DNA from: Basidiobolus meristosporus CBS 931.73
Lineage: Eukaryota; Fungi; Basidiobolomycota
Length of the DNA: 64,000 nt
Direction: 5' to 3'
Assembly: GCA_002104905.1 (NCBI GenBank)
Contig: MCFE01000109.1
Span: forward strand, 1 to 64,000
Under the pieces are notes generated by a model. That model saw nothing but the letters and a program-made list of their open reading frames with translations, was not told the origin of the DNA and did not search any database. Position numbers and translations under genes: made by a program. This document shows, in pieces, positions 3,854 through 48,704 of the stretch. The number at the start of each line of letters is the position of its first letter. Positions within the stretch are counted from its first letter, which is position 1.

Positions 3854-3926
3854 CGAGGCGCATGGGACTCGAACCCACAATCCCCAGATCCGAAGTCTGA
3901 TGCCTTATCCATTAGGCCAACGCCCC
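3854..3926 (-). tRNA. tRNA-Arg (anticodon TCG)
   Basis: GGGGCGT...GCGCCTC-G acceptor stem, anticodon arm TCAGA-ctTCGga-TCTGG, T-loop TTCGAGT; 73 nt. Confidence 0.95.
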
Positions 3927-29980: not shown

Positions 29981-30056
29981 GTATCCTTTGTGTTGGTTAC
30001 ATCCATCAATTCGCCTCATCCATTTGTTCAGTTGTTCCTTAACATTGTTTGTATAG
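29981..30056 (+). other. U12-type (minor) GT-AG intron in the RPL13 5' UTR
   Basis: 5'SS GTATCCTTT, branch TTCCTTAAC at 30035-30043, TAG 3'SS 13 nt later and 3 nt before the ATG. Confidence 0.8.
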
Positions 30057-42868: not shown

Positions 42869-43969
<1,101 letters not shown>

Positions 43970-44973
43970 TCAGAATTGCCTCGTCACCCACATAGGAACT
44001 ACTCAATGTTATTACGTACAAATTTCTAGAAGATCGAATTGATAAATGTGCGGTATTCCGATAGTCGAGAACTTTTTGCCTTAATTGGTTCTCAGCCCAG
44101 CCATTCGTACCGATCGACACGTTGCCCATGAATCCAATTCGGATCATTTCCTCGGTTACAAGATCGAATCAAGTTTGCTGTGTATTCTGGATGAGAGATC
44201 TTCCCAGATAACTGGTATGTTGTGTCCATGATGGTGCTTTCGTTTCAGTGAGTGTTGGGTAACGCGGTCCATGAGGCCTGCTGATTGGTGGAATAACCCC
44301 ATATCGTTTCTCCCTAAGCGAGGTTTAAATTCCTGGTTAAATTAGGCATATTAGGCCCTGAACCCTAACCCTAGACTACTCAAAATCACTAACTTTATGC
44401 TAACTTTTGGGCATAAACATCAGGTTTATGCGGATGATTGAAAATACCGGTTTTATTTGTTGCTCAGCCAGAATCATCTAATTATCACCCGAAGTACAGT
44501 AGGACCTTGAGTCGGACCCCAGTTCATGCCATCATTCTTCCGTCAGAATTAAGTCAATATTGCATGGGCCATGGTCGCGATTCCTAAAAAATACTGTCAA
44601 TGAAATTGAATGGCTCAGTTGCGCGACCCTCGACAGCCCAGGAGAACCAATGGAAGAAGATGAAGTGAAATTAATGCAAGTTGGGTACGTTTCAAGAGCA
44701 GCATCCACAATAAATTAAGCTTGTCCATTTAAATGACAGTCACTTGGAAAAGTCACTCAATTTGCCAACTGCTGAAACTGATTGGAACGTTTACTCGGCG
44801 CAAATGATGGATCCTAGGAGGCTGTCAATGGTTCATTAGATGCTTCCCCTCGCCTACACGTTTTCTCAAGTCAGCCCTACGATTGATCATTTCTATTGTG
44901 GAAACACCTCACATCCTTTCATCCCCTCCACTCTGACGCTTAGCCTTCTTGATACCCACGAAACTTTACCACC

Positions 44974-47127
44974 ATGATGAGGCAGATAAGAAACTTCTTC
45001 AAGTCCACCGTCGCTGGTATTTCCTTGACCGCACTTGCATGCCATACCTCCGGAGAGGAAATTCATGTTTTGTATAGGACACGAGCCAATGAATTCACAC
45101 TTCTCCTCAAAAAGGGATCGTGCTGCCCAGAGAACCACGGAGAGGGAATTCCCGGACACATATAATGGCAAGGTCGCTGTTTCTTCCGAGTCCGGCGATA
45201 CCGAATTCGCTGTTGAACCCAACATTTCAATGTACCCTGAATTGGAGAGATACCAACTACTGGAAAAGCTGGGAGAGTAAGTGGGTTTTGCAAGGTTACC
45301 TATTCCCCCGTCGCCTCGCTATGAAACTAACTCCCCCAAAGTGGGGCTTTCAGCGATGTTTACAAAGCATTTGACAGGGTGTGTCAAAGGTTCGCGGCCG
45401 TAAAGGTGGTGCGAAAATTCCAACTCAACGCGGTCCAGGTAAGCGCAGCCTTTTACCACATGGCGTCCTGGACACTTATCGATCGGTTGGTGGGCTTAGA
45501 GAGGAAATATCCTGAAGGAGGTGACGATCATGCGCAACATCAACCACTGCAATGTAGCCAGGCTTTTGGACTTCAAAGAGACCAAGGATTTCTACTTTCT
45601 CGTCCTCGAGCTCCTGGAGGGGGGAGAGCTCTTCCACAGAATCGTCAAGCTCACGTATTTCTCTGAGGACCTTGCCCGACATGTAATCACTCAAGTGGCC
45701 AGAGGAATCCAGTATCTGCACGATGAGAAGGGGGTCATCCACAGGTAGACCAAGTCCGCGGCAATGGCCTATCTTACAGATGCTCATCATCCAAACCCTG
45801 ATATAGAGACATCAAACCAGAAAATCTACTATTTCAAGCGATACCCTATAGGTATAGAGATACCATGTCCGATGAACCCATCGAGTTGGATGAGGAGAAG
45901 CTGGACGAAGGCGATTTCGTTGACGGAATCGGAGGTGGTGGTATCGGCGTGGTGAAGATTGCCGACTTCGGGCTATCCAAGGTGGTATGGAATAGCGACA
46001 CAATGACTCCCTGCGGAACTGATATCCTTTTACATCTTTCCCGAGATACCTTTACCCCACCACTCGATCATGTCGATCCTTAACCTGGCAACACTAGGCT
46101 ATACAGCTCCTGAGGTAGTCCGAGACGAACGCTACAGCAAATCTGTGGACATGTGGGCATTAGGATGCGTGCTCTACACACTGTAAGTAGATCAAGGACC
46201 GGCCAGGCGTTTCGTTCGACTGACCGAGTTTATTAGATTGTGTGGATTTCCTCCTTTCTACGACGAGGAGATTCACGCGCTCACCGAGAAAGTGGCCATC
46301 GGTCATTTTTCCTTCCTGTCCCCGTGGTGGGATGATATCTCCGAGAGCGGTCAGTATTTCTCTATCGCCCCCAGAGAGCCTTCCCTTTCTAAACGGCCTC
46401 CTTTTTCACGGGTCTAGCCAAGGATTTGGTTTCCCAACTGTTGACCGTGGACCCTTCGGTTCGTTACACGATCGCCGACTTCTTCAGCCATCCATGGATT
46501 AAGGGAGAGGTAGGGTGTCATGTTAACCCCTCCCCCCTGTATGTGAAACATCTCTTGCTCATACTGCTTCTAATTCATCAGAAGACCGAGGATTCTGGCG
46601 TCGGTGGTGCCCATGACACAGTGCCGCCTGATTCGGATGAAGAACGTTCCATCGATGCAAATCACCAAACCAATATCCCGCGGAAAACTCGCCACCTTAT
46701 GCCTCTACCCGTCACCCCCAGTATCTCCATCAAGGAGGCTATCGACGTGTCCTATGCGGTTCATCGAATGGAGGATGAGGAGGCAGCAAAATACCGATTC
46801 CGGAATGCGGTGCAGGGACATCATGCGACTGGGATCATTTCCAACCCAGCCCACCATAGAGGATTCTTGGAGGTGCTGCAGAACAGTCCCAACAGCGAGG
46901 ACATAAATACCATCAATGCTGCCTTCCAAAATGCTGGGTTACCGGGCCGATACAAGCCACAGCGAAGGAGTCAATTGACCCCCGGGGCCTCCACAAGCTT
47001 GGCACCCGAAACAGCCGCTACCAAGCGCGACTTCGCAACTAGTAGGGCAGAGTCAGGTAGTGGATTTGAGTTGAGCTTGGACCAAGCAACATTGCTGAGC
47101 AGGAGGAAAGCGAAGCTGGATTGCTAA
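44974..47127 (+). CDS. srk1: CAMK-group MAPK-activated kinase (Srk1/Rck2 family), multi-exon
   Basis: [13 protein letters not shown]-like [16 protein letters not shown], family insert [38 protein letters not shown] (after U12 splicing), [21 protein letters not shown]. Confidence 0.92.
46022..46094 (+). other. U12-type AT-AC intron in the kinase activation segment
   Basis: 5'SS ATATCCTTT, branch TCCTTAAC at 46077-46084, AC 3'SS; removal gives the exact TPCGTVGYTAPE. Confidence 0.93.
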
Positions 47128-47477
47128 TTGTCGAGAAGCGGAGCGTCGCACACAGAATCGCGATCTCCTCAATCGCCTGCCCCTAATGCTCCCCAATGTT
47201 CTCATGAAATGTATTCTAGCCGTTGACATTCCTCCCCTCCCATTGTAAAATAACTCAGCCCTGTTAAGCCCGCGAGATAGGCGAAATGGATCGTTGGTAT
47301 AGAGTGTCGGTTGGTGTTACTCATGGTTACTTATACCGATTTTGGATTGTGTTGGATAAACAAGTATTTGATGTTTGAAGTATGATTATATTTTGGATAA
47401 AATACATGATTGAATTAGGCGGGGTACACATCCCATTAGAATATCCTATTTGTATAAATCCGGTTGGAAGCGAGCGA

Positions 47478-48704
47478 CTAGGCGAGGCTGGTGCCACTGA
47501 TCCCCTCTTCCTTTCTTTTCTGTTGTGCCAAGTGAATGTGATTTAGTACATGCCGACCAGACATATTCCCTCAGGCGAACTTACTCTGTCCAACTCGGCT
47601 TTCGTCTGCTCCTCGATGTTGCGAATATCTTCGATGGTCAGGCCATACCATTGATCCATCAGGCAGAAGAGCTGCTTATGGAACTTCAGAAGGAGGTTCT
47701 TCATGATCTAAAGCCGTATTCGGTGAATTCGTGAGGGGACGTGGATCGATTCGGTTGACACTTACTCCATGAATAAAGGATTCCACTCGGCCTTGCAGGC
47801 CGAACCATTGGAACTTGACCGTCACCAGCTTGTAAGCCGTCATGACCGGTTCACAGGTTTTCTGGGGGGGGATCGTTAGTCGTGGAACCCGTCGGTTATT
47901 CATTCTGTCCATCCTGCTTACCATCCAGTCGCCAGTGAGTGGGCCTCTCCCCGTCTTCTGCGATTTGAAGAGCGTGGGGTCTTGCTCGGCATTGTAGTCG
48001 TTTTTGTCGAGCTTATCTTTGGCCGCGTCCATGATCACGACCTCTCGCTTTTTCAATACCTCGGGAGGTGCGCGTACAGCCTGGTCGAAGTGAACCACTT
48101 CAGTATCTGCACATGAAAGGGGAGCAGTTATCTGATACTCACGTTCTCCAGGTTACCACGATCGTCTGCCACGTGCATGGTCTCGGTGACGAGCTCGAAG
48201 TTCTCTTTCATGTATCCGTTCTATTGACAAGAAGTGAAAGGTTAGCGGAGCACACGAGATTCGGCCGCGAAGTATACCCACTGTGACGACTACGGTTGAA
48301 GGGGAAGGTTAGTCTTTTTGCTAGGCAACCAAGCTGACCCCGATGGGATAGGTACCTGTTTTGCAGTACGGATAAGCGTTCCATGCCTTCTCCTCGAGGA
48401 TCAAGGCTCCGGCTGGTGCAAGTGCACGGACCCACCCGGGGACCTTACTTGAATGTCGGGTTAGTCTCAGACCCACCAAGAGCTTCTGGGATACGGCACT
48501 TTACCTCGAGAGATGATAAATCTTGTGCGTGTACTGGCCTTTGTTCCCCGCCTCGTCAACGTAGGGTTCATTTTTCAACACCTCCACCCCTTCACCACCG
48601 CCCGTTTCGGCCTTGGAAGCCTCGGCGACTGAGTACAGCTGCGCGATTTTGTACTCCTCTAGGGTGCAGTTGGTGGTGAATCTGTATTCTTTTATTAAAG
48701 TCAT
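47478..48704 (-). CDS. START-like phosphatidylinositol transfer protein (PITPalpha/beta type), multi-exon with 8-nt microexon 48282-48289
   Basis: IKEYR...[98 protein letters not shown]. Confidence 0.93.

Follow-up and report, generated by a model that had tools for sequence, protein, structure and literature searches.

A probable U12-type AT-AC intron in the activation loop of a Srk1/Rck2-type kinase gene of Basidiobolus meristosporus, missed by the public gene model

A genuine U12-dependent AT-AC intron very probably (at a probability of about 0.9) interrupts the activation loop of a Srk1/Rck2-type MAPK-activated CAMK gene in the fungus Basidiobolus meristosporus CBS 931.73, at positions 46022-46094 of the 64,000-nt stretch of contig MCFE01000109.1 analysed here (hereafter the window). 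The U12 signals, the exact restoration of the reading frame, the conservation of site and signals in related genes and the error in the public annotation are direct observations, and from them we infer that the intron is excised in vivo and that the minor spliceosome is responsible. That B. meristosporus is rich in minor introns is already known, and the kinase intron is otherwise ordinary, of textbook U12 type and expected in this species; what is new concerns the public gene model, which lacks this intron and predicts a broken kinase.

A nine-exon Srk1/Rck2-like kinase gene

Our model of the gene comprises the following features.

44974..47127, + strand: Srk1/Rck2-like CAMK gene, 9 exons, 545 codons (model of this analysis)
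44974-45016, 45078-45276, 45342-45438, 45500-45744 and 45807-46021, + strand: exons 1 to 5
46095-46182, 46237-46349, 46418-46509 and 46582-47127, + strand: exons 6 to 9
45807..46021, + strand: exon 5, encoding DIKPEN (catalytic loop), the GGGGIG insert, DFG and the activation loop through TPCGT, and ending on the first base of a Val codon
46095..46182, + strand: exon 6, completing the Val codon with two bases and encoding 28 further residues

All nine exons are open under a conserved eight-intron structure, in which the introns correspond one-for-one, at the same residues and in the same phases, to those in the public models of a B. meristosporus paralog (P0151, locus L002) and of its B. ranarum counterpart (P0268, locus L011). 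With the exons scanned one by one, the gene gives matches to the Pfam Pkinase profile, and the closest solved structures, with exon 4 as the query, are those of CDPK, CaMK1, CaMKII, CHK2 and DAPK, which places it in the CAMK group; the solved-structure search with exon 5 alone gave no match. When exon 5 was searched against 1.8 billion representatives, it matched B. ranarum Srk1 with 92% identity over 71 aa, a protein that NCBI names [quoted passage not shown]; the B. ranarum locus was taken from P0268, the longer isoform of this protein (P0001, variant 2).

Srk1 of S. pombe and Rck2 of S. cerevisiae are MAPK-activated protein kinases of the CAMK group. The window gene has in common with them the kinase domain, the Srk1/Rck2-specific acidic and GGGGIG insert before DFG, the TPCGTVGYTAPE loop and a C-terminal ELSLDxATLLxRRK motif. 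Its best-matching named proteins are Srk1 or RCK2, the B. ranarum orthologs carry the NCBI name Srk1, and in our tree the Basidiobolus clade nests within the fungal family. Membership of the predicted protein in the Srk1/Rck2 family of MAPK-activated CAMK kinases is supported. Basidiobolus differs from these reference species in having seven family members that fall into two subclades, with the intron in one subclade only, while the Srk1/Rck2 genes of Dikarya have no minor introns at all, this intron class being absent from Dikarya (PMC10639083), in agreement with what a first-pass annotation of this DNA had stated for AT-AC introns.

The AT-AC intron and its splice signals

46022..46094, + strand: probable U12-type AT-AC intron, 73 nt, phase 1, in the activation loop
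46022..46031, + strand: U12 5′ splice site ATATCCTTTT, a perfect match to the consensus /RTATCCTTT
46077..46084, + strand: U12 branch-site box TCCTTAAC, a perfect match to TCCTTRAY
46081..46083, + strand: in-frame TAA reached on intron retention, by read-through translation

The branch adenosine is 46082 or 46083, which lies 11-12 nt from the 3′ end of the intron (10-15 nt is typical of U12 introns), the intron ends in AC at 46093-46094, and the sequence between branch site and 3′ end, CTGGCAAC, contains no polypyrimidine tract. Exon 5 ends in ...ACT CCC TGC GGA ACT G and exon 6 starts with TA GGC TAT ACA GCT CCT GAG, and the 46021/46095 splice yields exactly TPCGT-V-GYTAPE, within the activation segment TMTPCGT-V-GYTAPE. 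The Pkinase profile is unbroken at this junction: the match in exon 5 runs to position 160, the piece in exon 6 begins at 163, and the split Val codon and the Gly account for positions 161-162. Because the profile is contiguous across 46021/46095, the junction is exact to the residue. Reading through the intron gives 20 foreign codons and then the TAA. The first-pass annotation had proposed an AT-AC U12-type intron in the activation loop of a Srk1/Rck2-family kinase, removal of which gives TPCGT-V-GYTAPE and retention of which meets an in-frame stop; the latter two statements are confirmed at 46022-46094 and 46081-46083, and signals, exact junction and conservation all agree with the proposal itself.

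Such a combination of signals is rarely expected by chance. A full motif set, defined as RTATCCTT, then TCCTTRAY, then AC or AG 6-13 nt on, has an expectation of 0.047 per 64 kb in a first-order Markov simulation and was observed twice; none of the 300 simulations gave two or more. Both instances coincide exactly with exon junctions, and RTATCCTT by itself is not enriched in the window (5 seen against 4.6 expected).

Another U12-type intron in the window belongs to the GT-AG subtype.

29981-30056, + strand: U12-type GT-AG intron, GTATCCTTTG...TCCTTAAC...TATAG

Its 3′ end stands 3 nt ahead of the ATG start codon in an RPL13-like gene, which puts the intron in the 5′ UTR. The branch box stands at offset +55 in both this intron and that of the kinase gene.

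Conservation in a paralog and in B. ranarum

Comparison of the intron position in CAMK orthologs found the fifth intron of both eight-intron relatives to be AT-AC as well, at the same site and in the same phase.

L002 2550-2628: AT-AC intron (fifth) of the B. meristosporus paralog, ATATCTTTTT...TCCTTAAC...AC, same site and phase
L011 2560-2630: AT-AC intron (fifth) of B. ranarum, ATATCTTTTT...TCCTTAAT...AC, same site and phase

In a three-way alignment the conserved elements are ATATC[C/T]TTTT, TCCTTAA[C/T], the terminal AC and the flanking exons only, with an unalignable intron body between them, and the public models of P0151 and P0268 already splice the AT-AC intron, reading TMTPCGTVGYTAPE. 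Synonymous divergence among the three genes is saturated (pS 0.83-0.93) and nonsynonymous divergence is low (pN 0.06-0.10; for the window gene, 0.08-0.10), and by their divergence the three are old duplicates. Under maximum likelihood, P0151 and B. ranarum P0268 form a pair to which the window gene is sister, which means that the duplication is older than the split of the two species. Since the U12 boxes have been kept between old duplicates with saturated pS, their conservation over such a distance argues for selection on the signals, and hence on recognition by the minor spliceosome.

The public gene model

The public model of the locus, P0156, is a 464-aa [quoted passage not shown] that maps at 100% identity to the window exons (MCFE01000109.1 43730-48627, equal to window 43730-48627) and is without the AT-AC intron 46022-46094. 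It departs from our model at several points, two of them within exon 5.

45985..46045, + strand: GT-AG intron of the public model, in frame; drops 37 coding bases and retains 49 intron bases as coding
45807..45857, + strand: catalytic-loop stretch skipped by the public model, 51 coding bases, 17 residues including DIKPEN

At the first of these, P0156 reads DFGLSKV, then crosses the splice junction into sequence translated from the 49 true-intron bases, with the result that the conserved 13-residue activation segment is lost and 17 intron-derived residues stand there instead. At the second, the use of an acceptor at 45857 rather than 45806 causes the DIKPEN catalytic loop to be skipped. P0156 also starts at an internal Met (45230), omitting the first exon (44974-45016) and the intron 45017-45077, both of which are backed by the paralogs, and at the last intron it uses the acceptor at 46590 instead of the first AG at 46581, an in-frame difference of 9 nt. 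Of the fetched family members, 235 have a DFG...APE loop; 222 of these carry [TS]PCGTxGYxAPE and 12 carry near variants, P0156 being the sole real outlier. The 12 codons that it discards differ from the paralog only synonymously (8 of 8 codon differences), and the same holds against B. ranarum (4 of 4).

As the 45985-46045 splice swaps out the conserved activation segment, the kinase is not restored, and judged on its sequence this splice is spurious. The first-pass annotation had gone somewhat further in finding no GT-AG solution at this site: GT-AG splices from 45982 or 45985 to 46045 do keep the frame open, but none restores the kinase, the activation segment being replaced. Its expectation that standard annotation would mis-model the intron is borne out by the use of GT-AG 45985-46045 in P0156. 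All other in-frame GT-AG, GC-AG and AT-AC options near the site were enumerated and rejected, as conserved residues were deleted or replaced. Only the 46021/46095 splice gives a kinase with an intact activation loop.

U12-dependent splicing relies on base pairing of the 5′ splice-site box with U11 and subsequently U6atac, and of the branch box with U12. In the kinase intron, the ATATCCTTT box would be bound first by U11 and next by U6atac, and TCCTTAAC by U12, leaving the branch adenosine bulged out at 11-12 nt from the 3′ AC; the spacing between branch and intron end, short and fixed, would select the terminal AC. Excision would join ACT G to TA GGC and so produce the family-invariant TMTPCGT-V-GYTAPE, whereas unspliced RNA would terminate at the TAA after the 20 foreign codons and the GT-AG splice of the public annotation would give a protein that lacks the conserved activation loop.

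Minor introns in B. meristosporus

Two surveys place B. meristosporus among the fungi richest in minor introns, with counts of 249 (Larue & Roy 2023, PMC10639083) and 237 (Olthof et al. 2024, PMC11347168), as anticipated by the first-pass annotation, which had suggested a U12-rich genome. Genes for U11, U12 and U6atac have been reported for the B. meristosporus lineage, and U4atac as a putative divergent match only (PMC11347168). An Rfam scan of the 64-kb window found no minor snRNA gene, just a major U6 and two tRNAs, and the evidence from this locus for a functional minor spliceosome is indirect and not, as the first-pass annotation had claimed, direct.

1072-1193, 1305-1376 and 3854-3926, all - strand: major-spliceosome U6 and two tRNA genes

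The U6 match scores 79 bits, with 122 nt matched to a model of 105 positions, which implies that it has inserted bases.

The kinase intron resembles the catalogued U12 AT-AC introns of B. meristosporus (PMC10639083, PMC11347168) in its 5′ splice site, branch box, branch-to-3′ distance, AT-AC ends and phase 1, as well as in species, and differs from them in being missing from the public gene model. What the two surveys classified were introns already annotated (PMC10639083, PMC11347168), and the intronIC software shifts a boundary by no more than about 10 bp, and does so only where the annotated ends are non-canonical. For these reasons the intron was probably left uncounted among the 237-249 published minor introns, a judgement drawn from how the surveys worked.

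Alternative explanations

It is very unlikely that the public model is right, such that a U2-type GT-AG intron at 45985-46045 is removed and ATATCCTT...TCCTTAAC...AC is a coincidence or a relic. The deposited splice keeps the reading frame open, and it has a donor GTATGG, an acceptor TTTCCCGAG and, about 23 nt upstream of the latter, a CTGAT sequence that would make a plausible branch site, so that its use in some transcripts is possible. Nevertheless, it deletes a segment kept in 234 of the 235 family members, made up of codons that evolve purely synonymously, and inserts unconserved sequence in its place; the equivalent GT-AG splice in the paralog is out of frame (56 nt, by our own count on the L002 sequence); and the loss of the catalytic loop from the same model marks it as unreliable in this region. 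Introns with AT-AC ends that are of U2 type exist, and a metagenomic homolog of the kinase (L009, discussed below) has ATAAGT...AC at exactly this site, which is compatible with such an intron. The full U12 5′ splice site, the branch box at a U12-typical distance, the lack of a polypyrimidine tract and the conservation of the same U12 boxes in three genes nonetheless make removal of the kinase intron by the major spliceosome extremely unlikely. We attach just as little probability to the window gene being a decaying paralog whose intron is no longer processed. Its branch is the longest in the clade (0.66) and its public model looks broken, but part of that length stems from the tree having been built with the public sequence, which is mis-modelled, while the nine open exons under the conserved eight-intron structure and the low pN against saturated pS speak against decay.

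A functional role for the intron has also been considered, in which its retention would act as a regulated switch that limits Srk1 until stress signalling raises the activity of the minor spliceosome. Srk1/Rck2 kinases act downstream of p38-type MAPK, and retention would bring in the premature TAA. Work on human cells has shown p38 MAPK to stabilise U6atac and to increase the splicing of minor introns (Younis et al. 2013, PMC3728624), an effect that would suit such a switch. The minor introns described in that work as “embedded molecular switches” are like that of the kinase gene in being single minor introns among major ones, in a stress-pathway gene, whose retention truncates the product; the difference is that the mechanism was shown in human cells and not in a fungus (PMC3728624). 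Four of the seven Basidiobolus Srk1-like genes do without the intron, however, most minor-intron evolution has been argued to be neutral, and no link between minor splicing and proliferation was found in Rhizophagus (PMC10639083). By analogy with the human system a switch might be envisaged, but we consider it improbable.

Age of the intron site

Compared gene structures revealed no intron at this position in the other four Basidiobolus members, in Rhizophagus irregularis or in Mortierella alpina. The intron-poor Basidiobolus subclade has lost all introns beyond the third, including introns 4, 7 and 8, which are common to Rhizophagus; because these paralogs have lost Rhizophagus-shared introns too, the absence of intron 5 from them is uninformative. 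The four Srk1-like paralogs concerned (L003, L004, L005) retain only the three 5′-most introns, and loss of all 3′ introns is a pattern typical of reverse-transcript-mediated loss. In the ortholog of Blastocladiella britannica a GT-AG intron (L012 610-678) splits the Gly codon in phase 2 and lies 4 nt downstream of where the Basidiobolus intron sits, an offset that could be due to sliding or to independent insertion.

Two metagenomic genes carry an AT-AC intron at this codon.

L009 939-1095: AT-AC intron of a divergent metagenomic Srk1-like kinase, 157 nt, exactly the same site and phase as the Basidiobolus intron
L014 7635-7725: predicted U12-type AT-AC intron of a metagenomic CAMK gene, ATATCCTTAA...TTCTTAAC...AC, same codon position

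The first gene (L009/L010) is about 55% identical to all lineages alike, and it also has the next intron, otherwise seen only in Basidiobolus. Its AT-AC intron has a U2-like ATAAGT donor and an internal ATATCCAT, with no well-placed U12 branch box within 939-1095, and may be an intermediate of U12-to-U2 conversion. The second (L014/L016), found by a DNA-pattern scan for TPCGT followed by G/ATATCYTT, is an AT-rich CAMK-group gene that reads TPCGT-V-NYVAPE. Since these two metagenomic CAMK genes, which are unrelated, have their AT-AC introns at the codon position used in Basidiobolus, the position may be old. We did not adopt a gain specific to Basidiobolus, given that the intron-poor paralogs are uninformative and that genes from outside the genus, too, have AT-AC introns at this site. 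It is conceivable, though doubtful on a sample as tiny as two metagenomic genes, that the phase 1 site after the activation-loop CGT is an ancient CAMK U12 site kept in Basidiobolus and lost or converted in other lineages, with L009 as a natural U12-to-U2 intermediate; the alternative is a hotspot of independent minor-intron gain. Literature searches on minor introns in CAMK genes and on the method used to annotate B. ranarum returned nothing relevant.

Implications

With AT-AC introns recurring at one codon of CAMK genes that are unrelated, there is a small test case here for how old minor introns are and how they convert. More generally, the published minor-intron counts for B. meristosporus rest on gene models that are able to hide such introns, and in the present case a hidden intron has led to a conserved stress kinase being predicted without its catalytic loop and without its activation loop. 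Scanning Basidiobolus for U12 introns independently of annotation would fix models of this kind and would probably raise the count.
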